Sequence record: OP729297.1
Strand: one strand, 5' to 3'
DNA length: 64,000 nt
Positions 7,851 to 56,540 of the stretch are shown piece by piece. Positions within the stretch are counted from its first letter, which is position 1. Each line of letters opens with the position of its first letter. Made by a program: the position numbers and the translations under genes. Under the pieces are notes generated by a model that ran no database searches, was not told the origin of the DNA, and saw only the letters and a list, made by a program, of their open reading frames with translations.

Positions 7851-7859
7851 TATTTACAG
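7851..7859 (-). promoter_or_regulatory. class B motif CTGTAAATA
   Basis: Intergenic, 32 nt before ATG. Confidence 0.65.
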
Positions 7860-16164: not shown

Positions 16165-18684
16165 TTACTCGTCGTCATCGTCATCAGAAGTCTTCGCAGA
16201 CTTACTGATAGCGTTCTTCAACATCTCGTTGCCTTTGGTAGACTGCACGAACTTGAAGCACCACAGACGCAGGCCAGCAGGTTTGACTTTCAGTTTCTTA
16301 CACACGCCAACAACTTGCTCTTTGCTGCCGTTGATAAGAGTACGGAAGTCATCCCAGTCCATCTTAACGTCAGATGCGAGCGGGCATGGCGCCTTGATCT
16401 TGAAGCTCTTACGAGTGCCGTTGATCAGGCCGAGAGTTTTCAGGTAATGCCACGTATCGAACACTGGGTCGAAGCCACGCGCTTCACCGTTGCCGTCAGC
16501 TTCCCACAGACGTAACCAAGTCTGCTGGTTAGGGATGCCGCCCATCTTGTTCTTGATGGTCTTGGCTGCAATGAAACGGTAGCGGTCGGTACCACCTTCA
16601 ACAGTTACAGACTTCTCACCAACGATACCCGGTGCGTCTTTCATTGTCGGCCAGCCCTGAGGCACAGCACGAGAAGCCAGACGAACACGCACGTCAGAGT
16701 TGTGGCTAACGAAACCGTTAGTGATCACAACAGACGTTTCTTCGACGTTCACATCCCAGAACTCCACAGGATTGACCAGAGCTTTCAGCGTGAACGGAAC
16801 AGGAACGATAGAGTTATCGAAGTTATACCAGTCGTCGATGTACGCCAGTTGCTGCATCAGCAGGTCGTACTGGTCATCGTAACCTTCAATCTGCTTATGC
16901 AGAATCAGGTCGAGAGCCTGTGCGAAGTCCTGCTCTGGCGCCAGATAGATTTTATCCTGGCCAGTCTGCAACTGATAGTCCAGCACATAGCGAGTCAGTT
17001 CAGGGAACACGTCAGCGATCACAGTCAGCATCTGAGTCTGACGTTGACGGCTGGTGGCCTCGAAGCTGATACCAGCAAACGCACCGAGTTCTCCCTGCGC
17101 TACCGCCGCTTCCAGCTCGTGGTAGTTCAGGCCAGGGATATGCAGGCCGCTTTCGTCGGCGTAAGCATAGATACCGATAGACAGCAGGTGACGTGCCCAC
17201 AGAGAGAACGTGTGAACATCGTCCTGATCGCCAATCATATCAGTGGTCAGTACGTTCGCAGCAAACGTAGTGTCGCCAGCAACGGCCAGAGGCAATTGTA
17301 CGCTCTTGAAGTCAGCGTTACCTAGCATCTGATAAATCAGACTGCTTGACAGGTCGAACTCGTCAGGCACGTTCGCTTTCAGTTCTTTCACAGGCGGTAC
17401 ACGCAGACCTGCGTACTGGCCTTTCTGCTCTGGATATTGAGCAAGCTGGTTGAGCGTGTTCCACTCAGGACGCAGCACAGCCATACCATCAGCAGTCGTG
17501 TCATACATGAAGGTGAACTGACGATGTTCAGCGCTGCCTACATACGCATGACCACCAGCGTTCAGTTCGACCGGGAACGGAGCGTCATCAACTTTCCACG
17601 CGCCATTGATCTTCTGGAAGCCGTCGAACGATTCGACCATAACTTCCGTACCAGCATCGATCAGCTCTTTGATCTGAGGTGCAGTCAGCACGCCGTGATC
17701 AGTACGAATCAGAGTATCGCGGTCGAAGCAATAGAACTTCAACGCGTCACCGCCAGGCTCATACTCAGGTGAGCCGAACATAACAGCAGGCTTCTGACGT
17801 AACTGGTTAACGCCAACGATGGTCATCATCTTACGACGCATACCACCACGGAAACGTTTGATGCCGTCGGAGAACATACGCGCTTGCAGCGCCATTGCTT
17901 TCGAGCCTTCGTCATCATCGACCTGATCCGGCATCATTGCTGGATAGGAGTCAACGATAACCATCGCCTGCATGTGTCCGTCTGGTGCAGGTACTTTGAA
18001 CTGGTTGTTACGGCTGAACCATTTCTTGTCATACTTACCAGCCAGCTTCTTCGCGTTCTCTTTGTTGTTCTCAAAGATGTAGTACGCGGTACCGTCTTTC
18101 TCAACGATCTTATCTGGCAGACGACGACGCAGCATCGACATATAATCGAAGAAGCGCTCACCGTTGTCTGGTGCATAGTAACGGATCTTAGGCTTAACGA
18201 TCCAGCTACCGTCTTCATCATCACGCACACCGAAGATAGTTTTCGGGTCAACGCGAACGCCGAACGTTTTCAACTGACCAGCAACGTACTCTGCGTCGGT
18301 TGAACCTTCGTAGTCAAACACTACGCTAATGCCAGAGTAATGCAGACGAATCAGGCTCGCCATAATACTCATGGTCATTGTTGACTTACAAGACTGCTCA
18401 CCGCCGCTAAACGTGTACCAGCCACCAGGGACAATACCACCGGACAGGAACATGTCGAGTGCGAGACAGCCTGTTGAGATACGAGGTGCGTGACGCGCTG
18501 CATCCTGCGAACTTACTTTCGTTTTCTTTTCGATGCCATCAAGAACATCGTCCATCAAACTAGCCAGGTCAAAGCCCATGACTTCTACGCCGCCAACATC
18601 ATCGGCCGCGAATGCTTTACCTTTCTTGGCTTTGGTTTTACCTTCGGCTTCTTTTTCAGCCTTGATTCGTTTCGCTTTAGCCAT
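16165..18684 (-). CDS. recA: RecA/UvsX-like recombinase containing an intein
   Basis: TGCLALD..GGI..G, Walker A GGEQSCKST, DYEG, VDS..AM, NQLRQK, PGGDALKFY. Confidence 0.93.
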   Translation of the reverse strand: MAKAKRIKAEKEAEGKTKAKKGKAFAADDVGGVEVMGFDLASLMDDVLDGIEKKTKVSSQDAARHAPRISTGCLALDMFLSGGIVPGGWYTFSGGEQSCKSTMTMSIMASLIRLHYSGISVVFDYEGSTDAEYVAGQLKTFGVRVDPKTIFGVRDDEDGSWIVKPKIRYYAPDNGERFFDYMSMLRRRLPDKIVEKDGTAYYIFENNKENAKKLAGKYDKKWFSRNNQFKVPAPDGHMQAMVIVDSYPAMMPDQVDDDEGSKAMALQARMFSDGIKRFRGGMRRKMMTIVGVNQLRQKPAVMFGSPEYEPGGDALKFYCFDRDTLIRTDHGVLTAPQIKELIDAGTEVMVESFDGFQKINGAWKVDDAPFPVELNAGGHAYVGSAEHRQFTFMYDTTADGMAVLRPEWNTLNQLAQYPEQKGQYAGLRVPPVKELKANVPDEFDLSSSLIYQMLGNADFKSVQLPLAVAGDTTFAANVLTTDMIGDQDDVHTFSLWARHLLSIGIYAYADESGLHIPGLNYHELEAAVAQGELGAFAGISFEATSRQRQTQMLTVIADVFPELTRYVLDYQLQTGQDKIYLAPEQDFAQALDLILHKQIEGYDDQYDLLMQQLAYIDDWYNFDNSIVPVPFTLKALVNPVEFWDVNVEETSVVITNGFVSHNSDVRVRLASRAVPQGWPTMKDAPGIVGEKSVTVEGGTDRYRFIAAKTIKNKMGGIPNQQTWLRLWEADGNGEARGFDPVFDTWHYLKTLGLINGTRKSFKIKAPCPLASDVKMDWDDFRTLINGSKEQVVGVCKKLKVKPAGLRLWCFKFVQSTKGNEMLKNAISKSAKTSDDDDDE
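16699..17730 (-). mobile_element. intein (344 aa) in RecA
   Basis: Begins CFDRDT (block A), block B AEHRQF, block F FWDVNVE, ends VSHN followed by Ser. Confidence 0.92.
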
Positions 18685-25667: not shown

Positions 25668-26078
25668 TCAAGTGTATCGAGAGTTGGGTTCTTTGCCGTC
25701 GAGAATATCGGTTAGGATATTTGCTCTGTAGTCCAGTAGCAATCTCTGGCCTTCGATGTTCTTGTCTTGACTATTAACCAGTTCTTCAAGGCGTCTAATG
25801 CGACGCTGAATCTCTGGTGTTGGATGCTTGCGACTGAGTAGAGCCATCTTAACTACCAGTTGTTCTCTCATGGTCAAGGCCGATCGCAGGTTATCACAGG
25901 TCTGGCTGACCAACATCAGCATTACCAGATACTTACGCGACTGTACTTGATCAGGTGGCTTTACCTTAGAGAGAATAACGTCGATGCAGCGAGGCACCAC
26001 ATAACCTAGCTGTTCAGTGCGATAGACAGACTCCTTAAGTCGGCGCAATGATCGTTCATAATCTTTTTGTATGCTCAT
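25668..26078 (-). CDS. hypothetical coiled-coil protein
   Basis: 136 aa, ATGA-coupled. Confidence 0.75.
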   Translation of the reverse strand: MSIQKDYERSLRRLKESVYRTEQLGYVVPRCIDVILSKVKPPDQVQSRKYLVMLMLVSQTCDNLRSALTMREQLVVKMALLSRKHPTPEIQRRIRRLEELVNSQDKNIEGQRLLLDYRANILTDILDGKEPNSRYT

Positions 26079-27166
26079 AGCTCAAATGTTTTTACGATAT
26101 GCTTCGGACGTTGAGACTTCTGCTTCTTGTCCGGCAGCAGACCTTGTTGTTGAGTTTTCCGACCCGTACTTACGATTTCCATATATGTCAGGTCAGGGTT
26201 GGCCATGATTCGCTGCTCTAACTTCTTCATGAAGTCAATCATGTGTGATTGAATAAAGCAATAGTCAACAAAAGGGCATGTGTCATATCCGTGGAACTCG
26301 TCCCAATAATACTCAGCGCTCTTGCACGGCTTACGTTTAATAGCTGGCAGCAGATCACCCGTGCGCGCCGATTTTACCGCAGCATCCCATGCGCGTATTT
26401 GCTCCATCATAAAATCTTTTGCGCGTTTTGACTCTGCCTCGTCAAACACAAAGGTCTTCTCGACAAACTTTTTAGGGTTGTCACGCGGTACGTACACCAG
26501 AGTGTAGTCCACGATGTTGTAGCCATAACGCTTTTTGAGAAGATAGGCGTAGGTCGCGATCTGAAAGCGATGGTACTTAACAAAGAACGAACCATCTGCG
26601 GCCTTAGTGACCATAGTTGATTTCAAATCGATCAGACTGTATGTGCCGTCAAGATTATCAATCAGTCCATCGACGTAACCTTTGAGTGACTTGTACAGGA
26701 CTTTCAATTCTGCATAAGCCATAGGTTGATCGCAAGATGGGCAGCGGTTGTTCGTGCTTTTAGTTCGCGTGTACTTCCCTTTCTTGTACTTACCGTCAAC
26801 CATTTTGCCTTTGGTCTTCGGGTACTCTACGCACTTCTCGTTGGTACACTTCCAGTGACCAACCATCTGACCACTGTGGCCCAGAGCATTCTGCAACGAT
26901 TCGTGCATCCCTGTCCCTGCTTTCGCAAAGATGTTCAGCAACGTACCAGACTCACCAGTCATGCACTTGTTGTGCTTCTGGTAAATCAGCTTGGCCGTTT
27001 CTTGAATCGCACAGATAGGAAACATTGAAGGGCTGACACGTTTCTTCGGCCAGCGCTTCTCTTGGTTCTTTACGTCAAGCGCAGCATCGATCATCTTGCC
27101 GATGCGCGACAACACGCGAGTATCATTGACTCGCGCTGGTACGTTTGCGAACGTTCTCATAGTCAT
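26075..27166 (-). CDS. Cas4-like PD-(D/E)XK exonuclease
   Basis: SPSMFPIC, GTGMHE, GYVDGL..LIDLKS, QIATYAY, C-terminal Cys cluster; inserted CxxxxC..CPSC. Confidence 0.85.
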   Translation of the reverse strand: MTMRTFANVPARVNDTRVLSRIGKMIDAALDVKNQEKRWPKKRVSPSMFPICAIQETAKLIYQKHNKCMTGESGTLLNIFAKAGTGMHESLQNALGHSGQMVGHWKCTNEKCVEYPKTKGKMVDGKYKKGKYTRTKSTNNRCPSCDQPMAYAELKVLYKSLKGYVDGLIDNLDGTYSLIDLKSTMVTKAADGSFFVKYHRFQIATYAYLLKKRYGYNIVDYTLVYVPRDNPKKFVEKTFVFDEAESKRAKDFMMEQIRAWDAAVKSARTGDLLPAIKRKPCKSAEYYWDEFHGYDTCPFVDYCFIQSHMIDFMKKLEQRIMANPDLTYMEIVSTGRKTQQQGLLPDKKQKSQRPKHIVKTFEL

Positions 27167-27522: not shown

Positions 27523-28581
27523 ATGGCAGAAGATGTCCATCAGATAATTCTCGATGAAATTGGCAAACTGCCAGGCGAGAAGAAATACAACGGCGACACT
27601 GTTATGGTGTGCTGTCCGTTCCACAGCGATAAGACTCCTAGTTGTGGTATTTACACATCTGTAGGGATGGAGATACCGCTCGGATTCTTTCACTGCTTTG
27701 GTTGCGGTGAGAAAGGTGGTTGGAACAAACTCGCAGCACACGCGAGACTACAAGAGATCAAAGGCTGGGCGCTAAAAGATGCTGGCACGAACTCTCTTAG
27801 TGCTCTGCTTAAAACGTATGACCAGATAGGCTCGAAGATTGGTACTTACCCATCAGTTGGTCTGTTGATGAAAGCGCTTGGACGTAAGAGCTACATGGAG
27901 TGGCCGCTTGATGTTGAGTGGCGCGGTTATCCTGGAGCGCTTGTTCGTGCTGCTGGTGGTTTGCTTAACGCACAGCACACAGGGACGAACGTTTGTTTCT
28001 TCCCATGCAAACACGGAACGAAATACATAGGTGGTATCGCTGCATATCTGCGTAAGCAAATGAACGGCACCAGCTATGTGAACTCGCAAGGTGATTGGGC
28101 AAAAGACAAAGGCCTGTTCCCACTTCCATTAGTCAAAGAGTGTTTGAAGAAATACAAGCTGCGGTACGTTGTGCTGGTGGAAGGTCCTCGTGATGCTCTC
28201 GCGCTGTTATCGTATGGTATACCTGCTCTGGCCGTTCTTGGCGCAGAACAGTTTGGTGAAACGAAACGCAGAACGATTGAGATGCTTGGTGTGAGTGTCG
28301 TGTACACCATGACAGATAACGATGGTGGTGGGAAGTTGCTGCGCACCAAGATCAAGGAAGAGTTTGCGAAGAACTCACCAGTACCAGTCAAACACTTCAA
28401 GCTGCCGCGTGAGTTTGATGAAGAAGGTAAACTGATTAAGCTCGACCCAGACAACGCACCATTCAAGTTGATCAAAGAAGTTCGCATGACACTGAAAGAC
28501 ATTCACGGCAAGAAGTGCATCATGCCAGCGAAAGCGCTTGGATGGAATCGACCTAAAGCAATAGAGAAGAAAGGAAAGTAG
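27523..28581 (+). CDS. dnaG: DNA primase (CHC2 Zn finger plus TOPRIM)
   Basis: CCPFHSDKTPS..CFGCG; LVEGPRDAL; TDNDGGG. Confidence 0.92.
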   Translation: MAEDVHQIILDEIGKLPGEKKYNGDTVMVCCPFHSDKTPSCGIYTSVGMEIPLGFFHCFGCGEKGGWNKLAAHARLQEIKGWALKDAGTNSLSALLKTYDQIGSKIGTYPSVGLLMKALGRKSYMEWPLDVEWRGYPGALVRAAGGLLNAQHTGTNVCFFPCKHGTKYIGGIAAYLRKQMNGTSYVNSQGDWAKDKGLFPLPLVKECLKKYKLRYVVLVEGPRDALALLSYGIPALAVLGAEQFGETKRRTIEMLGVSVVYTMTDNDGGGKLLRTKIKEEFAKNSPVPVKHFKLPREFDEEGKLIKLDPDNAPFKLIKEVRMTLKDIHGKKCIMPAKALGWNRPKAIEKKGK

Positions 28582-29523: not shown

Positions 29524-31293
29524 TTAAGCTGCCGCGACAGCTAAAGTGTCGGTGAAGTCAACATAGCCAGCATGTTGCACCACAAGCTGAGCCTGACCTT
29601 CAACCAGAGGGCCGGACAGCGTAATAATGAACTCACCAGTGGACGCATCAGCTACAGCATCACCCGTAACACTACCCTGCGTCAGAGTGACAGTAGAGCC
29701 AGGCGTTGCTTGTCCTGCAACGGTGTCTTCGCCAGCTTTCAGATCAGCATCAAGCTGACCGAGTGCTTCAACGACCAGAGTAACCTGGAAGGAAGCTGGC
29801 AGATATTGAGCGCGTGACAGTTCGACAGTAATCGGACCAGGCACAACGTTCGTGAAGCCGTTAACACTGAACGCACCCTGCGGATTTGAAGACGCAGTTT
29901 TGGTTTCGCCGTTCATGGTGATCTTAACGGTGGCGCTCGCAACAGTGTCACCGACTACAGCAGTCTGACCGTCCTGTGCTTGTTGCAGCGTAGGCGCAGC
30001 GAACTCTTCCAGAATAGTGAACGACGTTGAGCCATCTTCGTAGAACGCAGAGGTAACGTTGACCACACCAGTAGAACCCACACCAGCTTTCGCATCAACA
30101 CCAGTAATGTTGAACGTACCAGCAGCCAGATTGACAGTACCTTCGTACACGCCAGCCTGAACTGTTACGGTAACAGCGATATCGTTCGCTTCGGCATTCA
30201 GACCTGCAATGGTACCAGATACCACAGTGCGGGTTTCGCCGAACGCATCAGCGTCATCAACTGCGATTGCACCGAACTGGAGTTTAGTCGGCTGCATTGT
30301 CGCGGTTGCTTCATCGTAGCCGTCTTTTTCCAGCACACGAATAGACACAGCGCCTTTAACTGCACCGACAGTAGCAGTCCAGTCACCCTGCGCATTGGCA
30401 GTAGCGAACTGATTAGACTGGCCGTCGATCAGGATTTCGACTTCTGCTTCTGGCGTTGCTTTACCAGACAGAGAAGTAGTCAGGAACGATGCGCTGTCAA
30501 TCTGCGCCAGACCAGGCACTGAGTCAGTTACGACAGTTACCGTTTTATCCAGATAGCCGTCAGCAGTGAACGTCAGATGGATATCACCAAACGGCAGTGG
30601 ATCGACGTTGATAGAGAACGCACCAGCGTTATCAGCCTGGCCAGTGAACTGTTTGCTTTGTACCGATACCACGATATTAGCATTCGCAACAGTCGTTCCC
30701 GAAACCGTAGTTTCTTTGAAGACTGCATGAACAACAGGTTCAGGCATTGGTTGCAGCGGCTGTGGGCCTGCTTCGAAGTCGTAACGCGCTGGCGTATAAC
30801 CGTTTGCAGTTACAGTGATCGAGAACGGACCTTCTTCCAGACCAGACACGTCAACAGTGAACACGCCACTACCGTTCGAAGTACCAGTCCACACGTTACC
30901 GTTCTGTTCAACGATCACAACGGCGTTAGGGATTGTGGTACCGTCAACTGACACTGCACCAGCAACTGGAGTTTGTGACAGAGAAGGCTGTGGAATACCT
31001 TCACCAGGCTGAGGCATATCGTCAGGGTTCAGCAGAGCGACACGCTGCAACTGGATCAGAGATTTCAGTTGGCTACACGCCAGCAGGTTTTCCAGAGGCG
31101 CTTGCTGCGTCAGGTCAACAGCATTGCGCGTCGCAGGAATGATAACGTCCTTCATCTGGAAGTTGTCACCTGGGCACTGGAAAGAGATTTGACCCAGCGG
31201 CTGAGTCTGGTTGCTGACCAGCATCTGAGGCTCGCTCAGAATGTTGCGCTGAATAAAAGCGCGATACTGATCGAGAGAAATAAAGTTACTCAT
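29524..31293 (-). CDS. putative virion decoration protein with tandem Ig-like repeats
   Basis: ~5-6 repeats of the pattern SG.T.P.A.V.V....T..A...G.F.I. Confidence 0.8.
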   Translation of the reverse strand: MSNFISLDQYRAFIQRNILSEPQMLVSNQTQPLGQISFQCPGDNFQMKDVIIPATRNAVDLTQQAPLENLLACSQLKSLIQLQRVALLNPDDMPQPGEGIPQPSLSQTPVAGAVSVDGTTIPNAVVIVEQNGNVWTGTSNGSGVFTVDVSGLEEGPFSITVTANGYTPARYDFEAGPQPLQPMPEPVVHAVFKETTVSGTTVANANIVVSVQSKQFTGQADNAGAFSINVDPLPFGDIHLTFTADGYLDKTVTVVTDSVPGLAQIDSASFLTTSLSGKATPEAEVEILIDGQSNQFATANAQGDWTATVGAVKGAVSIRVLEKDGYDEATATMQPTKLQFGAIAVDDADAFGETRTVVSGTIAGLNAEANDIAVTVTVQAGVYEGTVNLAAGTFNITGVDAKAGVGSTGVVNVTSAFYEDGSTSFTILEEFAAPTLQQAQDGQTAVVGDTVASATVKITMNGETKTASSNPQGAFSVNGFTNVVPGPITVELSRAQYLPASFQVTLVVEALGQLDADLKAGEDTVAGQATPGSTVTLTQGSVTGDAVADASTGEFIITLSGPLVEGQAQLVVQHAGYVDFTDTLAVAAA

Positions 31294-34164: not shown

Positions 34165-34824
34165 ATGACTCGTATTAAGATCAGCTTGAGCAGTGAAGCG
34201 AATGGGGATATGACCAATAAGCCACAGCCTGCTTCTGACATTCCAGATAGCTGGCCAGATCCCAACAAGCTGACAGGTAAAATTCCGTTTGACGCGAATC
34301 AGAGCGAAACAGCCGACGACATGTTCGACCCTGATAAAGCTGTCGAAGGTAACCCTGATTTGCGCAACGGCAACACCAAGCCGGGCGCAGAGGGTAAAGC
34401 GTCACGCCCTGACGAGAACTACCGTGCTGGTGGCCGTACCACGAATCAGGTTGAATCCGTGCATTGCAATAAAGTGAATGCGCTCGGACAGCCTGTTCGT
34501 TTCACGAAAAACGACATTATGAGCGGTGGTCTATCGTTCAAAGACCTGTTCGGTGACGTATTCGGCGATATCTTCGGTGATCGTCGTGTGCAGAAAGCGA
34601 TTAGCAGTGCGCTCACTGCTAACGAAGGCGTATCGGTATCGAAAGGCAAGTCTAAATCAGCTAAAATGCGCTCGCAGATGCTTAAAATGGTCATGCCTGA
34701 GCTATCGCGTGAACAGGGCGAGCGTTTAGCGTCTGCGATGGCCGAACACGACGGCGAAACAGTCAAGCGAATACTGACTCAAATCGGTGTTAAGCTCGGA
34801 AAACGCGTTTCACAGAAAAAATGA
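34165..34824 (+). CDS. hypothetical protein with MTRIKISLSS N-terminus
   Basis: 219 aa, SD AGGAG; variant of the SLS tag. Confidence 0.8.
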   Translation: MTRIKISLSSEANGDMTNKPQPASDIPDSWPDPNKLTGKIPFDANQSETADDMFDPDKAVEGNPDLRNGNTKPGAEGKASRPDENYRAGGRTTNQVESVHCNKVNALGQPVRFTKNDIMSGGLSFKDLFGDVFGDIFGDRRVQKAISSALTANEGVSVSKGKSKSAKMRSQMLKMVMPELSREQGERLASAMAEHDGETVKRILTQIGVKLGKRVSQKK

Positions 34825-35227
34825 TCTGATTTTTCGTTTCAAAATTGGGGAAAGTCCTTGATTTTTCTCGGATTTTCCTCATTTTTAGTCTGAAAAGGGG
34901 CATTTGGTCAAAAAATGTACTACTTTTTTGGAAAAATTTACACGGTTTAGACGACCTAGGGTTTTCCGCTAGATCGCTGCCCAGGGTGCGTAGAGGGTGC
35001 AATCTCGGCTGTTCGGAGCATGGTTTCTTTATTTTCTATGTCTCCGAAACGTGCCGCCTAAAGATGTACCTGTAGTTGTAATGTTCAAGCGTACCACGAG
35101 CGTTGTAGCTAGCCCGCTGTAGCCCATGCCTTCCATGCCTAGCTGTTGTAGCTTCCAGCTGTAGCATTCGGAGTTAAGAGTTGTCTGATTCTGTAAAGAA
35201 ACGATAGAAAAATCAGGTAATCATGAT
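34825..35227. other. candidate replication origin / regulatory intergenic region
   Basis: ~400 nt non-coding; clustered T-tracts; TGTAGC x4 (35104, 35118, 35147, 35160); CCATGCCT x2. Confidence 0.4.
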
Positions 35228-36844
35228 GTGAACATGAAAAAACGAATCGTTTCCGGTCAGGGGCCCGTGCTCGTCACGAATCCCTCGTACCAGGAGAAGG
35301 AAGTCGTTATTTGGGTGCGAGACAACGTTATAAACGCTTGCCCGTACGAGGGGCCTGATGCTGAACAACGTGAGTTCCGTGCTCAATTGAACTTATTCTT
35401 CTGGCACATTCTTCAATGCAGCCTTTATCCTGCACGTAAACACAAAAAGAAGAAGTTTGGACGGGTCTGGGTGCCGTTTCCAAGCTCATTGGGCAAAGAG
35501 AAGCTACCTATGGTGTTCGGTCATCAAAGGGGCGGTGATAATGTAGCTGTAGGGCGATATGCCAAGTCGAAGAAAGGCACGTTTAGTAGATCCCTTGACT
35601 GGTTGATGGCTAACGTGTTTGAAACGAAACCGTACGATAAGAAAAAGGGCCTTAGTCGAGAGTTTAGGATGCGTCCTGAAATCTTAGACGGGATGTACGG
35701 GCATTTTAAGCCGCAGTCTCATTACGATATTTTGTACCGCATTCGATTCTATAGTCCTCTTAAAATCTTGAGAGAGGATTACGGGGTAACGGTGTGGTCG
35801 CAGATTCAGAAAAATTCTAAGCTGCCGTTCAAACGCCCTACGCACGATCTTAGCTCGCTTGATCGAAATCGTGACAGGGGTAACGGTAAGGAACTTAAAG
35901 GCCGTGCTCTTTATCGTAAGGTACTTGACAAGCTGATGCCGAATGAGGTGAACATCGAACCTATCCTCGCTTATTTAGAAGACAGGTCCTTGATTGCTAA
36001 TCACAAGGCGAAGAAGCAGTACCTGCAGGTTAAGACGTTGCTCGATACTATTGTGTCGGGGCCTGTTCAGATCGTTAGCGAGAAACCTCTTGTCATTCGT
36101 TATTGGCCTAAATATAGGCTGTCGCAAATTGGCGGACGACTGTTCGAAGTTGGTGGTGGGTTCCAGAACTTACCGTCAGACCTGAAAGAGCAATGTTACA
36201 CGATTGGCACTAACTGGGATATGAAGTCCAGCCAGTTCAACGTGTTGCGTAAAGAGTTTGGCGCTTACGGAATTGAGTGTGCGATGTTTGATACGGTAAG
36301 CTCCGTTGATGATATCAGTCGCATAATGAAATTGGACAGACGTGCAGCAAAAGTTTGTTTATACGGTACGATCTTCTCGGCAGGCCAACTTGAGACAACG
36401 AAGTACAGCAACGTCTTTAAGGAACTTGCTCGCTTCATGCCTGTCTCGAAAGTGAAAGAGGAGATATTGGATTGGAATACGAGGATGACGCCTCTGTATT
36501 TCGCCATCACTGATCTGCTTGGTGTGTATCGTTCCAAGTTCCGAAAAAATAAAAATGCACGGAGGCCAGAGTACGGCGTTCTCCAGTGTGCAACGGGATC
36601 GAACTATGATCCTGATCCTGACGATACGGACAAGAAGATTAAGAAGCGCGTTCTCAACCACATGCTTTCTGGGTGGGAGAGTTATTTTCTTTTCGATGCG
36701 ATTCTTAACTGCCCTAACGTCAAGGGTGTGTATTCTCTTGAGCACGATGGCGCATTGCTCTGCGTTGAAGGAGACACCGTAACGAGCAACCACGCCGAGT
36801 TTGTACTCAAGAAGTTTTCTGATAAAAAGATATTCTCGGAGTAA
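35228..36844 (+). CDS. family A polymerase-like protein (TV-Pol-like), no exonuclease domain
   Basis: GGRL..FQNLP, WDMKSSQ (motif A), RRAAKVCLY (motif B), LNHMLSGWE, LEHDG (motif C). Confidence 0.65.
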   Translation: MNMKKRIVSGQGPVLVTNPSYQEKEVVIWVRDNVINACPYEGPDAEQREFRAQLNLFFWHILQCSLYPARKHKKKKFGRVWVPFPSSLGKEKLPMVFGHQRGGDNVAVGRYAKSKKGTFSRSLDWLMANVFETKPYDKKKGLSREFRMRPEILDGMYGHFKPQSHYDILYRIRFYSPLKILREDYGVTVWSQIQKNSKLPFKRPTHDLSSLDRNRDRGNGKELKGRALYRKVLDKLMPNEVNIEPILAYLEDRSLIANHKAKKQYLQVKTLLDTIVSGPVQIVSEKPLVIRYWPKYRLSQIGGRLFEVGGGFQNLPSDLKEQCYTIGTNWDMKSSQFNVLRKEFGAYGIECAMFDTVSSVDDISRIMKLDRRAAKVCLYGTIFSAGQLETTKYSNVFKELARFMPVSKVKEEILDWNTRMTPLYFAITDLLGVYRSKFRKNKNARRPEYGVLQCATGSNYDPDPDDTDKKIKKRVLNHMLSGWESYFLFDAILNCPNVKGVYSLEHDGALLCVEGDTVTSNHAEFVLKKFSDKKIFSE

Positions 36845-36847
36845 AGT

Positions 36848-37372
36848 ATGAGTAAGGTACTTACCGAATATGAGGTTGTACGCTACGCAGCAATCTTGGA
36901 AACGATTCTGCAAAACAAGTACGGCACTTGTGCCAAGCTGTTTCAGGCGTACAAAGAAAAGAAGGAAGAGAAGCCAATTCTCATGGTCATGTATGATGCC
37001 CTGGTCTATGAGGAAACTCAAGGTCTGGCTTCACTGGATGACTGGTACTATGCTCACCCTGAATCTCATGCCCAAATCGAGCAGTACCTGAATACCGTTC
37101 ATCGTTTGTTGGGTGATACGGTGCCGAACAAAGATTTTCCTTTGGTGTTCAGCTACAAGTTGTTGCAGAATCATCTGCCTGAAAAGAATCCGATCGTCAA
37201 GCAGGCACGGTTCATGTACGACCGACTCCAACGTCTGTCCAACAAGATTCGCTTTCCTAAGGGATCTAAATCCGACCGTGAGTTTGATCGTATGTTGGCT
37301 AAAGACGGTTTCGCCACGTGGGACGATTACTTCGCCTACGAGCTTGAGCGTCAACTAGGCAAGAGTGATTGA
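36848..37372 (+). CDS. hypothetical protein
   Basis: 174 aa, 3 nt after the upstream stop. Confidence 0.75.
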   Translation: MSKVLTEYEVVRYAAILETILQNKYGTCAKLFQAYKEKKEEKPILMVMYDALVYEETQGLASLDDWYYAHPESHAQIEQYLNTVHRLLGDTVPNKDFPLVFSYKLLQNHLPEKNPIVKQARFMYDRLQRLSNKIRFPKGSKSDREFDRMLAKDGFATWDDYFAYELERQLGKSD

Positions 37373-37411
37373 TACTGTAAACTAACAGCAATCAACATAG
37401 AGGATTAATAT

Positions 37412-37606
37412 ATGACAGCTATCGTCAAACATATCTCCGTACACCCGAAGTTTCGTTATGCCCGTCGCGTAGGTATTTTTGACGAGCTGGACAAACGTGA
37501 GGCCGAAGCCAAACGCAAACAGAATCAGGGACGTCAGTCCTACAAACAGGTAGCGTTTGGCTATCACTACTCGTCCTCTCACCTCTCACCAACTCCTGAG
37601 AAATGA
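37412..37606 (+). CDS. small basic hypothetical protein
   Basis: 64 aa, SD GAGG, CTGTAAACT upstream at 37375. Confidence 0.7.
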   Translation: MTAIVKHISVHPKFRYARRVGIFDELDKREAEAKRKQNQGRQSYKQVAFGYHYSSSHLSPTPEK

Positions 37607-41435: not shown

Positions 41436-42722
41436 ATGGCGAAAGAAGAAAAGAAAAAGAAGAAGTCGCGTTCGTTCGGTGACGATAAGCCATCGAAAAA
41501 GAAAGGCGGTTCTTCCGAGTCTGTAGAGTTGACCACGATTAACTTTGCAGACCAATTCCGACCGAAGAAGATTGAAGACTATGTTGGTCAAGACCACATC
41601 GTTAAGATCATGAAAGGTTGGCAGAAGTCGAAAACGATTCCATCAACGATGATCATTACTGGCCATCTTGGTTCTGGTAAAACAACGTTTGCTCGTCTGG
41701 TGGCGAAGTACATCAACTGTGAATCGTTCTCGGCCTGTGGCAAATGTCGTTCGTGTGAAATGCACGACCGCGGCGCACACCCTGACGAGCAAGAGTTCGA
41801 TATGGGCGGTGAAGCTGGTAAAGTTGACGGCAGCCAGAAGATTGTGGACAGCGCACCATTGAGTCCGATGTTCAAACGTCGTGTGTTCATCTTCGACGAA
41901 TCGCATCTCATGTCCAGCGCAGCCGAATCGAAGTTCCTTAAGATCACCGAGCAGCCACCAGCGCACGTTGTATTCATCTTCGTAACAACGAACCCAGAGA
42001 AGATGAAGAACACGATGATCAGCCGCATGACGCAACTGCCTATCAGGCCGATTCCTACTGACGTGATTCATAAGCGTCTGTTGGAGATCAGTGACCAGCT
42101 TGATATCATGCCGAAGAAAGATAAGGCGCGTGATAAAGCAGACGCAGCATTGCATCAGGTTGCTGAATATGCTGGTGGCCAGATGCGTGGTGCAATCACC
42201 ATGTTGCAGAACATCTACGCTTCGGTGAAAGGTGGTGAGGACTTCGATAAGAACCTCGTTGCCGAACTCGCAGCAGCAGATCCAGAGATCGATATGGAAG
42301 CGAAAGCTGTCCAGATGATCGGTGCGTATCTTGCGATGGACCTGATTGGTGTTATTCAGTTCCTGCGTGAAGCGAACAACCCTCGTGCAATCGTAGCGAA
42401 AGCTCGTTGGATTATTCACGGTGTGTTGGGGCATTATGCCGAAACGAATAAGTGGCAGTCGGCTGGCCTCAAGATGTTCATGAACATGGTCAAGAAAGAC
42501 AACATCAAAGTCAATCTGGTCAGTTTGGTGTATCTGCAATCCGCATTAGCAGAAGCCGAAGTAGCATTCAACTCTACATCGGTGCCAGCAGATATCATGC
42601 TGGAAACTGTGACCACCAGAACCATGTCTGATATCTATAGCGGCAAGCTGGTGGTTGATTTGGGTAACGACGACGAAGACGACGAACCCAAAGAGAAGAA
42701 GAAAAAGAAAAAGAAGAAGTAA
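41436..42722 (+). CDS. dnaX: DNA polymerase III gamma/tau-like clamp-loader subunit
   Basis: FRP..EDYVGQ, GHLGSGKTT, INC..CGKCRSC, DESH, LKITEQPP, AGGQMRGA. Confidence 0.92.
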   Translation: MAKEEKKKKKSRSFGDDKPSKKKGGSSESVELTTINFADQFRPKKIEDYVGQDHIVKIMKGWQKSKTIPSTMIITGHLGSGKTTFARLVAKYINCESFSACGKCRSCEMHDRGAHPDEQEFDMGGEAGKVDGSQKIVDSAPLSPMFKRRVFIFDESHLMSSAAESKFLKITEQPPAHVVFIFVTTNPEKMKNTMISRMTQLPIRPIPTDVIHKRLLEISDQLDIMPKKDKARDKADAALHQVAEYAGGQMRGAITMLQNIYASVKGGEDFDKNLVAELAAADPEIDMEAKAVQMIGAYLAMDLIGVIQFLREANNPRAIVAKARWIIHGVLGHYAETNKWQSAGLKMFMNMVKKDNIKVNLVSLVYLQSALAEAEVAFNSTSVPADIMLETVTTRTMSDIYSGKLVVDLGNDDEDDEPKEKKKKKKKK

Positions 42723-44520: not shown

Positions 44521-44720
44521 TGACTGCTATCCAGCGCAAACCGATCGCTATGCCACTGTGGCGTGTTTTAAAACCAATCGCAAGCGATACCCGCGACGAA
44601 TCATATGCGTATGATGTGATCGCAGAATCTGCCGAGCCGTACACCGCTGATGAAATCGAAGTATTCGAACAGATTCACGGTACAGGTCTTATCCAGGAAG
44701 AAACAATCGAGTACGTCTAA
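44520..44720 (+). CDS. small hypothetical protein
   Basis: 66 aa, TAATG-coupled on both sides. Confidence 0.7.
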   Translation: MTAIQRKPIAMPLWRVLKPIASDTRDESYAYDVIAESAEPYTADEIEVFEQIHGTGLIQEETIEYV

Positions 44721-47056
44721 TGGGCAAAGCGAAGCAGAAGCAAAAACAGAACCACGGCATCGGCCTGAAAGAAATTCATCTGCGCGATGTTGGCGTGTAC
44801 AAAGAGCTTGATATCGACACACTGGACAGTGAAGGCTTCGCAACCATTTGTGGTAAGAACCTCGACAGTCCGAACGTTAAAGACAACACGAACGGTGTAG
44901 GCAAAAGCCTGTTGTTCGGTGCAATCCCTACGCTGCTGTATGAAGCTGATCCTCTTGCGATGAAGAAGAAAGACAAGGGGAACATGCTCGGCAAAGACAG
45001 TTCGATTGAGCTGGCGTGGGAATCACCTCTCGGTGGTGAAGTCCGTATCGTTCAAACCAAATCGAAGTATCAGGTGTTCTACAATGGTGAGAACCAGAAA
45101 GTAGATCGTCAGGATGTTGCTCGCTCTTGGGTGACGAAGCACTGGCCATTAACGCGTGACGAGTTCTATAGCTACGCATATATCCAGTCACAGATTCAGC
45201 ATCCATTCCAACGCGCTACTCCTGCTGAACGCCTGTCTTACCTGACCTCGTTGTTTAACCTGGATGTGTTCGATAACATTCGCATGGCGTTGAAGAAGAA
45301 ACTGGACTTGGCGAAAGACGCTGAGACAGAATCTAAAGGTCTGGCTGATATGCTGGACGTTACTCAACGTAAGCAGAACGCGTTGTCGATTCACGCCGAA
45401 GAAAAGAATACGCTCGCCTCAATCATCAAGCACTCTGATAAAATGAAGGCCAGACGTAACGATCTGTCGGAGCAGTTGATTGAACTTGGTACTCAGCGCT
45501 CGAACGCGCGGAAATACGAAAAGCTCAAGCATCAACTCGACACGTTAGGCATCGAATGCTCTGACCTGAAAGGCGAATTGAATGCGCTGCGTGGTGAACT
45601 GATCGAGCACGACCGCTACGACGATTACGTTGAAGCACTGGAGGAGTACCAACAGGAACTCGCTGACGTTAAAAAGAAAATGAAGGCGCTCGGTGATGTT
45701 GCTGACCTCGACAACAAAAAGCTGCGCAAAGAACATGGACGCTTAGTCAAAGAGGAAGAGAGCCTCGAAGCGTTGCTGGAGAAAGTCGATGAACAACAAG
45801 AAGAATACGACGAGTGGCGAGAAGCCGTGGACAAGCTCAGTAAAAAGCTGTCTAAGCTCAAGGCTCCTAAGCGAACTCAGGAAGAGGCACAAGATTCCCG
45901 AGCAGAAGCCAAAGCGATAGTTCAGGCGTATCGTGCTTTCGAAGAACACGACCACGACGGTAACTCTTGTCCTACCTGCGGTCAGGATGTTGACCTGAAA
46001 GCTATGGCGCGCGCTGCAACAAAAGCTCAGGCAATCATTGACGAGTGCATCGAGGCTTTGGATTATCACAAGCTCAACGATCAACTCACCGAATTGAAAG
46101 CTGAGAAGGTGAAGAAGCCTAAGCACAAGCGCAAGGACCTTGAGAAGAAACTCAAGGCAATCAGCACAGCACTGGACGCTATCGAAGAACAATTCGAAGC
46201 GGCTAAGAAGTACGAGAAGCTGGTGGCCAAGCGTGATGCGCTCAAGAAACCTAAAGCAGTGAAGCAGCCTAAGAAAGCTCGTAAGACGATCAAGAACCGA
46301 ATCAAGGACCTTGAGATTCTGAAAGACCTTCGTGCTGCACTCAAAGCTGTTGGTGAACCAGAAGACCCGTTCTATATACTTGATGGTCGATATAAAAAGA
46401 TTAGCGCCGAAGTTGAAAAGCTGATCACCGATATCGAGAAGAAGGAGCGTAAAGCGCAGAACATCCAGATGCGTATTCAGGAGCATGAGCACTACGAAGA
46501 AACGTTGCGTGAACTCCGTAGTAAACTCGCAGACCTGCAACCGCTGATTGATAAGCGCAAAGTATTCGAAGTCCTGTACAAGGCTTACAGCAACAATGCT
46601 CTCAAGCTGAAAGCGGTTGAAGGCCGTATCAAACAGATTGAGAAGAAGCTGAACGAATACAGCGGTCTGGTGTTCCCTGAGCCGATGCACTTCGATTTGT
46701 TCACTACCAAGCAGGGTGTTGGTGCAACCGTTACGCGTGTGTCTTCTAAAAAGACAACCGATATTGCAATCATGAGTGGTGCAGAGACAAACTGCTTCCG
46801 CCTGTTGTTTGCTGTAGCGATCATGCCATTCATCCCTGCTAACCGTCGCACGAACTTTATCATTCTCGACGAGCCTGATAATAGTTGCAGCCCTGCGGTC
46901 AGTGAGCACATCATCAACAACTTCCTGCCGATACTCAAACAGATTATCCCGAACATTTACTGGATAACTCCGAATGATGTTGAGCACTTCTCTCATAATC
47001 AGTGGACGGTAACCAAGAAGCAAGGTACGTCTGCACTTACACGTAAGGTAATGTGA
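44720..47056 (+). CDS. sbcC: SbcC/Rad50 (T4 gp46-like) SMC ATPase
   Basis: Walker A G..NGVGKS, Q-loop YIQSQ, Zn hook CPTCGQ, signature MSGAE, Walker B IILDEPD. Confidence 0.92.
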   Translation: MGKAKQKQKQNHGIGLKEIHLRDVGVYKELDIDTLDSEGFATICGKNLDSPNVKDNTNGVGKSLLFGAIPTLLYEADPLAMKKKDKGNMLGKDSSIELAWESPLGGEVRIVQTKSKYQVFYNGENQKVDRQDVARSWVTKHWPLTRDEFYSYAYIQSQIQHPFQRATPAERLSYLTSLFNLDVFDNIRMALKKKLDLAKDAETESKGLADMLDVTQRKQNALSIHAEEKNTLASIIKHSDKMKARRNDLSEQLIELGTQRSNARKYEKLKHQLDTLGIECSDLKGELNALRGELIEHDRYDDYVEALEEYQQELADVKKKMKALGDVADLDNKKLRKEHGRLVKEEESLEALLEKVDEQQEEYDEWREAVDKLSKKLSKLKAPKRTQEEAQDSRAEAKAIVQAYRAFEEHDHDGNSCPTCGQDVDLKAMARAATKAQAIIDECIEALDYHKLNDQLTELKAEKVKKPKHKRKDLEKKLKAISTALDAIEEQFEAAKKYEKLVAKRDALKKPKAVKQPKKARKTIKNRIKDLEILKDLRAALKAVGEPEDPFYILDGRYKKISAEVEKLITDIEKKERKAQNIQMRIQEHEHYEETLRELRSKLADLQPLIDKRKVFEVLYKAYSNNALKLKAVEGRIKQIEKKLNEYSGLVFPEPMHFDLFTTKQGVGATVTRVSSKKTTDIAIMSGAETNCFRLLFAVAIMPFIPANRRTNFIILDEPDNSCSPAVSEHIINNFLPILKQIIPNIYWITPNDVEHFSHNQWTVTKKQGTSALTRKVM

Positions 47057-54158: not shown

Positions 54159-54665
54159 ATGGAAAAGATATCCTTTACTGGCCATCGCCCGCAATCGCTG
54201 GGTGGATTCAGCCCTAAGGCAAAATACCGCCTGTATAAATTCGCGCACCGTAAAATGCTCACAATCGACGATGATGCAATTATCTATGTTGGTTGTGCTC
54301 TAGGTTTTGACATGGCCATTGCTACCGCTGCAATCGAGCAGGGCCATAAAGTTGTCTCCTGTCTGCCTTATCCTGGATTCAATTCACGCTGGCCTGTTAG
54401 CAGTGTGTTTGAGCTTGACGGCCTTCTTAATAAAAGTCACGAAGTAAGAATAGTCACATCAAAAGAAGATTGGCTGCACATGGATGGTCAGGCGGGTTTT
54501 GCGTTGAACAAACGCAATCACTACATGGTCGATGAAACTGATCGACTCATATCATTATGCTGCGGTGCTCCATCAGGTACGCAGAACTGTATCGACTATG
54601 CGCTCAGGCAGAACAAGCCCGTGACATACTGGTGGAAGGACTGGCTGCGATTCAATAGGAAGTAG
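54159..54665 (+). CDS. SLOG-family protein (YspA/DUF1273-like)
   Basis: FTGHRP, GCALGFD, RNHYMVD, SGTQNCIDYA. Confidence 0.85.
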   Translation: MEKISFTGHRPQSLGGFSPKAKYRLYKFAHRKMLTIDDDAIIYVGCALGFDMAIATAAIEQGHKVVSCLPYPGFNSRWPVSSVFELDGLLNKSHEVRIVTSKEDWLHMDGQAGFALNKRNHYMVDETDRLISLCCGAPSGTQNCIDYALRQNKPVTYWWKDWLRFNRK

Positions 54666-55451: not shown

Positions 55452-56540
55452 ATGGACTCTGTAGTGATGAAAAAGAAAAAAGTATCTGAGATGTTAGAGG
55501 CTCTTGTCACATCTGACTGGCACTTCGAAGGGCTTGCTAATCATTTCCCTACTGACCACGTTGACCGTCAACTCGAAACGATCGACCGTATCTATCAGTA
55601 TGCAATCGAGCACGGCATTCGTCACATCTTCGTTCCTGGGGATATCACTGATAAGTTTAAGATGGACGACGAGACTAAGCGCAAGCTGCTCCAGTTCTTC
55701 TTGAAGTACGAAGGGATTATTGATACGTGGTATAGCGGTGGCAACCATGACTGGGCAGATATGTCGAACACCAGCATGGACTTGATTAAGACGTTCTGTG
55801 AGTGGGACTTCTTAAAGTCACTGCACATCTACCTGCGTCCTGAACAGGTAGAGATTGATGGTGTGATCGTTAACTTCCTGCCGCACCCTGCGAAAGAAAG
55901 TATCAGACACAAGAAGCCGTGCCTGAACTTCTGTCACGTTGAAGCAGTTGGTGCTCTCGGTGATAACGGTCGTCCGCTTAAAGCGAAGCACGATATCAAG
56001 GTTGACCCTCGTGACTATACGATAAGCGGACACATCCATCTTGCTCAGGTGCTTGAGAAGAAGCGCTTCGAGTATTGTGGTTCACCGTATCAGAAAACAT
56101 TTGGGGAAGCGTTGCCGAAGGGATTCATCCACATTCGCGCCAAATATAAAAAAGGTGAGCTGGTGGTTCAACGGAAGTTCGTTGACAGTAAGCCTGGGTT
56201 TAGATTGGAAACAGTTGCAATTGAAAATCAGAAAGACTGGTCACGTCTGGAAGTAAACCCTGCGATTCGCTACCGACTCATTGTTAAAGATACGGTGTCA
56301 ATCCCAGCAGATATTCGTACACGCGTCCCAAATATTTCCCAAATAAATTCCACGAATAAACGTGTCGATCTCGATAATATAGATACAGTTGATGTTAGCG
56401 AGCTGGCGCTTGCGGATATTGACCCACGTGATGGCCTAAAGGATTACCTGAAGGCTTCGGGAATTAAAAAGTCTTTGCGGGTTCGTGCTCGCAAGGAACT
56501 TGACGCGGTGTTATCTGAAATAGGGTATGCTGCTATGTAA
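55452..56540 (+). CDS. sbcD: SbcD/Mre11 (T4 gp47-like) nuclease
   Basis: TSDWH, PGDI, GGNHD, GHIH, YCGSP. Confidence 0.92.
   Translation: MDSVVMKKKKVSEMLEALVTSDWHFEGLANHFPTDHVDRQLETIDRIYQYAIEHGIRHIFVPGDITDKFKMDDETKRKLLQFFLKYEGIIDTWYSGGNHDWADMSNTSMDLIKTFCEWDFLKSLHIYLRPEQVEIDGVIVNFLPHPAKESIRHKKPCLNFCHVEAVGALGDNGRPLKAKHDIKVDPRDYTISGHIHLAQVLEKKRFEYCGSPYQKTFGEALPKGFIHIRAKYKKGELVVQRKFVDSKPGFRLETVAIENQKDWSRLEVNPAIRYRLIVKDTVSIPADIRTRVPNISQINSTNKRVDLDNIDTVDVSELALADIDPRDGLKDYLKASGIKKSLRVRARKELDAVLSEIGYAAM

Follow-up and report, generated by a model that had tools for sequence, protein, structure and literature searches.

An open reading frame of Erwinia phage vB_Ea_2910A, a 263-kb Alexandravirus (jumbo phage), is predicted to encode a stripped-down second polymerase that has the Pol I fold and a complete set of catalytic residues. 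The gene occupies positions 35228–36844 (+) of the window, i.e., the whole 64,000-nucleotide stretch of record OP729297.1 that was analyzed. Its start codon is GTG at 35228, with an ATG at 35234 as an alternative, and its 538-aa product belongs to PHROG 30690 and is deposited as WAK44581.1, 'hypothetical protein'. We tentatively hypothesize that it is a priming DNA polymerase resembling the CCPol–MP pair, that is, a second, exonuclease-less family A enzyme with a partner encoded downstream; this reading is plausible rather than probable.

Fold, active site and family of the predicted polymerase

The initial annotation had picked out an open reading frame with divergent PolA-superfamily motifs, and all of them are real and stand in the proposed order in the 538-aa translation: YDKKKGLSREF (aa 136–146), GGRL (302–305), FQNLP (312–316), WDMKSSQ (330–336), RRAAKVCLY (371–379), LNHMLSGWE (476–484) and LEHDG (504–508). 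Sequence searches did not show the relationship, with zero Pfam matches to the protein even at E <= 10 and nothing useful for the protein and family profiles in Pfam, NCBIfam, PADLOC or the PDB sequences. The superfamily assignment is borne out by structure: a Foldseek search of the PDB with the AF2 model (pLDDT 80.7) matched Klenow (1kfd) at E 8e-7 over about 370 aligned columns, and every one of the 16 matches at E <= 0.001 is a family A DNA polymerase. Profile comparison agrees: set against 10 diverse PolAs in hhalign, the family profile scored 90.7% probability and E 1.3e-6 with every motif in register. Eight phage PolA genes were used for the PolA comparison profile, because a search started from the polymerase domain of E. 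coli Pol I gave enterobacterial Pol I sequences only, at >=92% identity and of no use for a profile.

The predicted catalytic core (aa 296–515; 36113–36772, +) comprises the Arg hairpin with R304, motif A with D331, the steric-gate position Gln336, the O-helix (R371/K375/Y379/F383), helix Q (N477/S481/G482/E484) and motif C (H506–D507–G508). In the hhalign register these correspond to Klenow as R304=R668, D331=D705, K375=K758, Y379=F762 and H506–D507=H881–D882, with Klenow N845 also aligned. Gln336 falls at the position of the Glu710 steric gate; having the same bulk, it would be expected to favour dNTPs. Motif C reads HDG, with Gly508 where Klenow has Glu883; the position of Klenow Tyr766 is Phe or Met in the family (Phe383 in the vB_Ea_2910A protein), and at that of Q849 the family consensus has Gln but the present protein Ser481. 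Two PolA carboxylates are thus exchanged (Glu710 to Gln, Glu883 to Gly), and the enzyme may for that reason be weak or changed in its activity. Upstream of the core, the model predicts the palm entry and a short bi-helical thumb (aa 185–295; 35780–36112, +; helices 243–254 and 259–277), as judged from the Foldseek alignments. Neither a 3'-5' nor a 5'-3' exonuclease domain was detected in the 538-aa protein, in keeping with its earlier description as exonuclease-less; by the same Pfam analysis, the canonical PolA of this phage carries DNA_pol_A_exo1.

The structural matches also include T7 RNAP and POLRMT/mitochondrial RNAPs (E 3e-3 to 1e-2), and motif C lacks the Glu typical of DNA polymerases, both of which would suit a T7-type single-subunit RNA polymerase or an enzyme that makes RNA primers. 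This alternative is nevertheless highly improbable, as DNA polymerases score about 1000-fold better in Foldseek. T7 RNAP has Gly at the steric-gate position and a Tyr, Y639, that senses the 2'-OH, whereas the phage protein has the bulky Gln336 at the gate and Phe383 where the sensing Tyr would be expected.

The N-terminal alpha/beta domain (aa 1–175; 35228–35752, +) has the order H-beta-H-H-loop-H-beta-wing-beta, and an N-terminal region of at least 231 residues is always present in the family. YDKKKGLSREF had been likened to the wing of a winged helix. The order of secondary-structure elements over aa 82–148 is compatible with this, but the domain modelled alone (pLDDT 62) gave no significant Foldseek match (best E 0.33) and no PDB-sequence match, and the winged-helix label was therefore rejected.

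At 50% identity the family falls into at least 337 clusters, almost all of them on phage or metagenome contigs, and 54 of its 55 phage records are deposited as 'hypothetical protein'. Its motifs sit on invariant columns across 17 homologues with identity down to 43%. Among 59 diverse members, R304, D331, K375 and E484 are invariant (59/59), as are D507 and G508 (58/58); position 336 is Q in 52/59 and H in 6/59. Only 24/59 carry R or K at position 371, so the Arg of the RxxxK motif is not family-wide. By these alignments, the apparent family hallmarks are Gln at the steric gate, an HDG motif C and the invariant Glu484 in helix Q. None of the 59 members has a Pfam match at E <= 0.01, and a Pfam helicase domain is absent even from members of 650–916 aa. 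Within this phage group the gene is syntenic and universal. Its dN/dS within an allele is 0.06–0.07, equal to that of the clamp loader, and it is under purifying selection.

Leader elements and cassette exchange

The preceding gene is followed by a terminator-like hairpin (34845–34871, +), beyond which the leader holds three sequence elements. The first is a GCCTAAAG box (35056–35063, +), about 170 nt upstream of the start, which is conserved in allele A and recognizable in other alleles; as a genome-wide motif it was rejected, with 3 copies against 1.3 expected in the window and no enrichment. The second is a direct-repeat array (35102–35165, +) of four G[T/C]TGTAGC copies, which form two ~21-nt units 43 nt apart. 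The third is a promoter-like box, TCTGTAAAGA (35190–35199, +), 38 nt upstream of the start. A structured leader RNA was also considered and rejected (fold z-score -0.5; the one Rfam match, to mir-553 at E 0.1, is noise).

The promoter-like box links the gene to other replication and recombination functions. A TCTGTAAATA box likewise lies upstream of the DnaG, clamp loader and SbcD genes, and the consensus common to these three and the polymerase-like gene is TCTGTAAA[T/G]A. In the window, TCTGTAAA occurs 10 times against 2.0 expected, on the coding strand every time and upstream of gene starts in nine cases; upstream of the polymerase-like gene, CTGTAAA is kept in all jumbo-phage relatives, JA11 included. 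The shared box, as a sequence pattern, suggests that the polymerase-like gene would be transcribed with replication and recombination genes from one promoter class. Alleles of the gene swap while the genome-wide TCTGTAAATA boxes stay unchanged, and phages of this group encode a sigma-70-like factor acting with host RNAP (PMC7412058), two further points against a T7-type RNA polymerase.

The initial annotation had inferred that the protein acts at the adjacent origin-like region (34825–35227). The promoter-like box and the four TGTAGC copies are present and are inherited together with the gene, but nothing observed there marks it as an origin. An origin-specific initiator, in which the TGTAGC repeats would be the binding site of the N-terminal domain, the polymerase would lay the first primer, and protein and site would co-vary as a replicon module, is a doubtful reading of the locus. 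It would account for an array that is unique within the 64-kb window (0/200 shuffles) and persists in allele A relatives, for the joint exchange of leader and gene, and for the winged-helix-compatible order at aa 82–148. Yet the N-terminal fold search returned nothing significant, the promoter-like box explains part of the leader conservation, and the cumulative GC-skew minimum of the window lies near 24–28 kb, not 35 kb. The repeats, moreover, are significant mainly in allele A and weak, marginal or absent in alleles B and C, JA11 and distant relatives; as a family-wide feature they were rejected.

Leader, polymerase-like gene and a small downstream ORF form an exchangeable cassette (~34889–37397, +), delimited by a collapse of identity. 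Its flanks are 80–86% identical at the nucleotide level to those of five close relatives (L024, L025, L026, L028 and L029), and identity collapses across the cassette. On the left, collinearity with the other-allele loci L024, L025, L026 and L028 ends at 34886–34891, ~20 nt past the terminator-like hairpin; with L029 it ends at 34824. At least four allele types, 40–55% identical, occur within flanks that are 80–93% identical. Sequence comparison thus indicates that the three elements are replaced together between close phages, with sharp boundaries. That the alleles arose by gradual hyper-divergence was rejected because of these boundaries and the low within-allele dN/dS. Co-inheritance of the leader could merely reflect sites open to recombination.

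Divergent alleles within such more similar flanks are typical of specificity or conflict loci. A conflict gene, whose nucleic-acid product would counter host defence or exclude rival phages, would account for ancient alleles swapped among close relatives. We consider it improbable: there was no match in PADLOC or other families, within-allele constraint equals that of the clamp loader, and the gene, which occurs throughout the phage group in conserved synteny, shares its promoter-like box with replication genes.

The downstream ORF (36848–37372, +) begins 4 nt after the polymerase-like gene, encodes 174 aa and is inherited together with its allele, which makes its product a candidate partner protein. 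An ORF of 156–174 aa always follows in Alexandravirus alleles, those of the other alleles (156–172 aa) being non-similar ORFs in the same place, and ORFs of 112–119 aa are found in two distant loci. Across alleles these ORFs are not detectably homologous (A–C, E 0.006; A–B, none), and the ORF has no Pfam or PDB match.

Replisome setting and candidate roles

The phage appears to own a full set of replication enzymes besides the 538-aa protein. Its canonical exo+PolA replicase matches DNA_pol_A at 1.4e-52 in Pfam; the DnaG-type primase that the initial annotation had noted is present at 27523–28581 (+), with a CHC2 zinc ribbon (Zn_ribbon_DnaG) and Toprim; and the clamp loader (DNA_pol3_delta2/AAA) lies at 41436–42722 (+), both of the latter genes being preceded by TCTGTAAATA. 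Given these three, the 538-aa protein would be an accessory polymerase. The surroundings are rich in recombination and repair genes, namely a UvsX-like protein (16165–18684), a PD-(D/E)XK nuclease (26075–27166), SbcC (44720–47056) and SbcD (55452–56540). Directly downstream are small unknowns, then PHROG 17197 (labelled 'peptidase' in PHROGs, no Pfam match) and a polynucleotide-kinase-like protein.

From the fold, the active-site register and the gene pairing we infer catalytic activity, DNA rather than RNA as the product, a partnership with the 36848–37372 product and, by analogy with CCPol, a priming role. The polymerase and the small protein would then form a self-contained module for specialised DNA synthesis beyond that of the replicase and DnaG, in which DNA chains would be started or restarted by a primase-polymerase, as by the TV-Pol enzyme CCPol with MP, probably from dNTPs. 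Against this reading stand the DnaG primase already encoded by the phage, the lack of a linked helicase, unlike in TV-Pol/D5 or CCPol/Cch2, and the lack of detectable homology between the downstream ORFs of different alleles, which leaves an OB-fold, MP-like partner hypothetical.

Fold and active site would serve equally well an accessory DNA polymerase that extends primers but does not make them, working with UvsX, SbcCD and the nucleases in gap filling, translesion synthesis or recombination-dependent synthesis. The polymerase domains of Pol nu and Pol theta are exonuclease-less and fill such roles in cells, and Pol theta is among the Foldseek structural matches of the AF2 model. The recombination and repair genes all around, the UvrD helicase, RNase H and 5'-3' exonuclease genes that adjoin distant family members, and a priming function already covered by DnaG all fit this proposal. 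It leaves unexplained the ever-present N-terminal region and the close association of each allele with its own small ORF and leader, and we regard it as possible, if on the unlikely side.

A bolder form of the priming hypothesis would be a new type of portable module for replication initiation, in which a PolA-fold enzyme, guided by a DNA-binding domain at its N terminus and by an allele-specific partner, primes de novo at the adjacent repeat array, and jumbo phages keep and swap mutually incompatible initiator/site alleles as cassettes. We offer this as a speculation that is unlikely to hold.

Whatever the role, a large constrained family that Pfam, NCBIfam and PADLOC do not see, and that so far has no name, would mean that large phages already owning a full replisome carry a second branch of the Pol I/T7 RNAP superfamily, one that is highly derived. 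If the protein does prime DNA, it would follow CCPol–MP as the second experimentally tractable family A-based primase and would be the first such enzyme in the replisome of a lytic phage. Through its altered active-site shell (Gln gate, HDG, helix Q Glu) the protein is an experiment of nature on PolA chemistry and could yield an enzyme tool, and the sharp edges of the exchanged cassette make the locus well suited to the study of how phages replace replication genes module by module.

Comparison with known polymerase systems

With family A DNA polymerases (Klenow, Taq, Bst, T7 gp5; PF00476) the 538-aa protein has the predicted thumb–palm–fingers fold in common, and T7 DNAP likewise has Tyr at the F762 (B3) position, here Y379. 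Canonical PolA enzymes are found by PF00476, whereas the 538-aa protein is not, nor is it by any PDB sequence search; they carry Glu710 and the HDE triad in place of Gln336 and HDG, and they lack the invariant Glu484 of helix Q and the unrelated N-terminal domain. T7-like single-subunit RNA polymerases share the superfamily fold, a large N-terminal domain and a Glu-less motif C. They differ in their weaker structural match, and the phage protein is much smaller and has, by the Klenow register, the Gln336 gate and Phe383.

TV-Pols were defined by a minimal core with a bi-helical thumb, an Arg beta-hairpin, an RRM palm with two Asp and RxxxK fingers; they are never fused or linked to nuclease domains, occur with a D5-like helicase or as TV-PolN with a resolvase, integrase or transposase, and are carried by Sputnik (V13) and bacterial mobile elements (Iyer, Abhiman and Aravind 2008). 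The 538-aa protein resembles them in its two thumb helices (243–254, 259–277), the R304 hairpin, D331/D507 and K375, and in being nuclease-free and virus-borne; the best viral structural neighbours of the AF2 model include the replication protein of Zamilon and other virophage or giant-virus replication proteins (E 9e-8 to 2e-5). The earlier TV-Pol-like label therefore holds for the minimal, nuclease-free architecture (AF2 model, Pfam) but not for gene context, since the D5-like helicase or TV-PolN setting was absent in 6/6 contexts inspected, among them the window, JA11 and three distant contigs. Unlike TV-Pol genes, the gene is a core syntenic one in large phages with a full replisome. Ma-LMM01 gp134, a 'putative DNA primase' beside transposases, was rejected as a TV-Pol, as it matches neither the family nor PolA, and no ORF at 95–140 kb of Ma-LMM01 matches either profile.

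CCPol primes with dNTPs only together with MP, the product of a small gene that directly follows its own (Bebel et al. 2020; Rice 2023). It remains recognizably near Pol I/CHEAP polymerases and keeps exo-domain helices, unlike the 538-aa protein, and its operon continues from the OB-fold partner MP to a helicase gene, whereas here no helicase follows and the partner alleles are mutually dissimilar. In both systems, the CCPol–MP pair of SCCmec and the phage locus, an A-family domain without a working exonuclease is directly followed by a small ORF, and the two go together as one unit.

A conserved family A polymerase core

The polymerase-like gene occupies 35228..36844 on the plus strand (GTG start, 1,617 nt, 538 aa), with window position 35228 corresponding to position 221228 of record OP729297.1, the 262,854-bp genome of the Alexandravirus Erwinia phage vB_Ea_2910A, in which the ORF is 100% identical; all genes in the surrounding 25 kb are deposited as 'hypothetical protein'. 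The start codon is ambiguous, being either the GTG at 35228, 8 nt after AGGTAA, or the ATG at 35234, at which some homologues begin (MKKRIVSG). This ORF and the motifs quoted for it in the initial annotation were all recovered in the order described: YDKKKGLSREF (aa 136-146), GGRL (aa 302-305), FQNLP (aa 312-316), WDMKSSQ (aa 330-336), RRAAKVCLY (aa 371-379), LNHMLSGWE (aa 476-484) and LEHDG (aa 504-508). They form invariant columns in an alignment of 17 homologues with identity down to 43%. The protein had no match in Pfam, even at E <= 10, or among PDB sequences; NCBIfam and PADLOC likewise yielded none, whether queried with this protein, with three other alleles or with distant members. PHROG 30690 matched at 2e-223 and is labelled 'unknown function'.

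An AlphaFold2 model built from a 17-sequence alignment had a mean pLDDT of 80.7, with most of the C-terminal half at 85-92. In a Foldseek search of the PDB, the Klenow fragment (1kfd; E 8e-7, ~370 aligned columns) was followed by Taq, Bst, M. smegmatis Pol1, apicoplast Pol, Pol theta, Pol gamma and T7 DNAP; every one of the 16 matches at E <= 0.001 was a family A DNA polymerase, and T7 RNAP and mitochondrial RNAPs stood lower (E ~3e-3 to 1e-2). Among predicted viral structures, jumbo-phage relatives ranked first, and next came virophage and giant-virus replication proteins, such as those of Pyramimonas orientalis virus (9e-8) and Zamilon (1.9e-5), mixed with ordinary phage PolAs. The AlphaFold/Foldseek check that had been suggested thus recovered a family A polymerase fold, and this fold, together with the hhalign register, supports the proposal of an exonuclease-less family A polymerase-like protein.

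The register was obtained by comparing a 59-member alignment of the family with a PolA profile of E. coli Pol I, T7 gp5 and eight diverse phage PolAs (hhalign probability 90.7%, E 1.3e-6, 192 columns). It equates G303-R304 with Klenow G667-R668 (Arg hairpin), Q313, N314 and P316 with Q677, N678 and P680, K320 with R690, D331 with D705 (motif A), Q336 with E710 (steric gate), R371, K375, Y379 and F383 with R754, K758, F762 and Y766 (O-helix), N477, S481 and G482 with N845, Q849 and G850 (helix Q), and H506-D507-G508 with H881-D882-E883 (motif C). R304, D331, K375 and E484 are kept in 59/59 members, D507 and G508 in 58/58, and Q313 in 58/59; 52/59 have Gln where Klenow has Q849. Register and family-wide conservation together indicate that the catalytic residue set is complete. 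Three hallmarks distinguish the family: a steric gate Gln, not Glu, in 52/59 members, HDG instead of HDE in motif C, and Glu484, a new and invariant residue of helix Q. The bulky Gln would still discriminate against ribonucleotides, which makes DNA the probable product, and Glu484 may functionally replace the two lost carboxylates.

At least 231 residues precede the Arg hairpin in all family members. The model places an N-terminal alpha/beta domain at aa 12-170, with helix 44-66, beta 82-84, helix 86-97, a loop, helix 122-129, beta 131-134, the YDKKKG turn and beta 144-148, an order compatible with a winged helix. Modelled in isolation, this domain reached a pLDDT of 62 and had no significant Foldseek match, the best E being 0.33 and the PadR-type and A49 winged helices standing among the insignificant matches only; its profile had no match among PDB sequences. 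The winged-helix wing proposed at YDKKKG agrees with the element order but finds no significant fold or profile match, and the reading remains no more than a hint.

Exchange of the gene and its downstream ORF

Three related jumbo-phage loci (L024, L025 and L029) have flanking genes 75-93% protein-identical to those of the window and a polymerase-like gene only 40-45% identical; the 174-aa downstream ORF (36848-37372, plus strand) has no match in them. Across five related phages, collinear nucleotide identity of 80-86% ends at 34824-34891 and returns at 37397-37401 in four of the five, and at 37588 for a long block in L024. Identity stops and resumes at these boundaries, so the replaced unit comprises the polymerase-like gene together with most of its leader and the ORF behind it.

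Alleles of at least four types (A to D; the window carries A) can be distinguished, 40-55% identical to one another, and behind each comes an ORF of 156-174 aa. By BLAST, the downstream ORFs fall into three groups without similarity to each other; those of A and C share a DFPL motif and a C-terminal R.L.K.D ending (hhalign E 0.006, 6% probability). The flanks of a further relative, L023, are only 75-80% protein-identical, yet it carries the same allele as the window, an incongruence that shows recombination. The alleles diverge all along the protein, least in the catalytic core (59-65% identity) and most at the fingers tip (17-25%), with no special variability in the N-terminal domain. Among allele A phages, the polymerase-like gene has a dN/dS of 0.06-0.07, as against 0.06-0.11 for the clamp loader; the downstream ORF has 0.05-0.08, with 0.2 in the most distant comparison. 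The sharp cassette pattern and the low within-allele dN/dS show that the gene is functional and constrained and that the alleles are old lineages swapped as a block.

Replication genes, promoter-like boxes and the leader

According to the literature (PMC7412058), this phage group has a UDG-exo-PolA replicase along with a beta clamp, a clamp loader and a sigma-70-like factor. The canonical PolA replicase lies just past the window's right end, at record 259918-262854 (L031:9918-12854), is 76% identical to the 1,051-aa Pol I of Dickeya phage JA11 and matches DNA_pol_A (1.4e-52) and DNA_pol_A_exo1 (1.3e-16). Its gene crosses the start point of the circular record, and the deposited annotation gives it no CDS; WAK44626.1, a minus-strand 'hypothetical protein' annotated inside it (record 260731-261486), is probably spurious. 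Two genes upstream, the phage's giant helicase, of 1,948 aa with SNF2-related and Helicase_C domains (L031:2382-8228, record 252382-258228), likewise has no name in the record. The window itself encodes a PD-(D/E)XK nuclease (26075-27166), a DnaG-type primase (27523-28581), a clamp loader (41436-42722), SbcC (44720-47056), SbcD (55452-56540) and, on the minus strand, a UvsX/RecA-like recombinase (16165-18684). The recombinase has 839 aa against 501 aa in JA11, and since its residues 22-830 match a 506-position PHROG profile, it carries a ~340-aa insertion, possibly an intein or homing-endonuclease insert. Amid this block, a 589-aa protein (29524-31293, minus strand) has CarboxypepD_reg and Big_6 (bacterial Ig) domains; its JA11 equivalent is labelled an inverse-autotransporter-like protein. 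As the phage has both an exo+PolA replicase and DnaG, the polymerase-like ORF is an accessory polymerase, neither the replicase nor the sole possible primase.

The window holds 10 copies of the octamer TCTGTAAA, where 2.0 would be expected, and 0/100 shuffles reached this count. All copies are on the coding strand and nine stand shortly upstream of gene starts, including those of DnaG, the polymerase-like gene, the clamp loader, SbcD and an ORF at 54159. The boxes lie at 7853, 14891, 21106, 25470, 27474, 32017, 35190, 41389, 54143 and 55426; eight of the ten have the form TCTGTAAATA, and the copy at the polymerase-like gene reads TCTGTAAAGA. All jumbo-phage relatives retain CTGTAAA upstream of their homologue, even JA11 with its 36% protein identity. 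The TCTGTAAATA boxes are candidates for a phage promoter class of replication and recombination genes, and the shared box would place the polymerase-like gene in that regulon. Our preferred reading, which we hold tentatively, is an active accessory DNA polymerase working with its downstream partner, the two most likely starting or restarting DNA chains. Its main rival, a plain primer-extending polymerase of repair or recombination, seems somewhat less likely.

The non-coding leader (34825-35227) contains a terminator-like hairpin belonging to the upstream gene, a conserved GCCTAAAG box not enriched in the window, the promoter-like box and four G[T/C]TGTAGC copies within 57 nt. No second such array exists in the window (0/200 shuffles), and allele A relatives keep it; repeats in other alleles are short and marginal, and none were found in distant relatives. 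A structured RNA was rejected (fold z-score -0.5, no credible Rfam match). Cumulative GC skew reaches its minimum at ~24-28 kb, away from the leader. The leader is unproven as an origin, and the role of origin primase/initiator first suggested for the protein is possible and likewise unproven.

Family spread and comparison with TV-Pol and CCPol

When 1.84 billion cluster representatives were searched with the family profile, 337 matched at E <= 0.001 and 105 at E <= 1e-10; the majority align with profile positions ~250-500 only. Ten sampled members were all metagenomic, nine without a name and one a 'hypothetical protein', and no Pfam domain was found in the 59 family members, including proteins of 650-916 aa. 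By tblastn, 55 phage records have the gene; every one is an Erwinia, Dickeya or Yersinia jumbo phage, and the gene's position in them is syntenic. A scan of 185,579 species genomes recovered a single locus, which lies on a MAG contig; as the scan is pattern-limited, it does not prove absence from bacteria. The JA11 homologue JA11_200 (L002:20001-21635) is annotated from an internal start (405 aa), the tblastn match beginning 417 nt upstream, and that of pEa_SNUABM_5 (MW366843.1 181163-182110) is labelled 'putative helicase', for which we found no support. In three distant metagenomic loci (L005-L007), the gene heads a run of same-strand genes after non-coding gaps of 264, 561 and 736 nt, which have no sequence motif in common with the window's leader. 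The passages on the topic in a 2023 PolA reclassification (PMC10201439) and a 2021 jumbo-phage survey (PMC7824862) do not mention the family, and 'TV-Pol' appears nowhere in the survey's text.

TV-Pols, proposed as primase-polymerases, have as defining features a bi-helical thumb, an Arg hairpin, a two-Asp palm and fingers with RxxxK; they lack a nuclease and occur with D5-like helicases or with TV-PolN plus recombinases (PMC2579912). The protein shows these structural features, and both contexts are absent around its gene in the loci inspected; support for 'TV-Pol-like' extends to architecture, not to membership. CCPol, the only characterised TV-Pol, carries out primer extension with dNTPs; for priming it requires MP, a small OB-fold protein whose gene lies immediately downstream and is followed by that of a helicase (PMC7581432, PMC10061031). 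Unlike in the CCPol-MP operon, no helicase follows the polymerase-like gene and small ORF; as with CCPol-MP, a small ORF lies directly downstream, a likeness of gene position.
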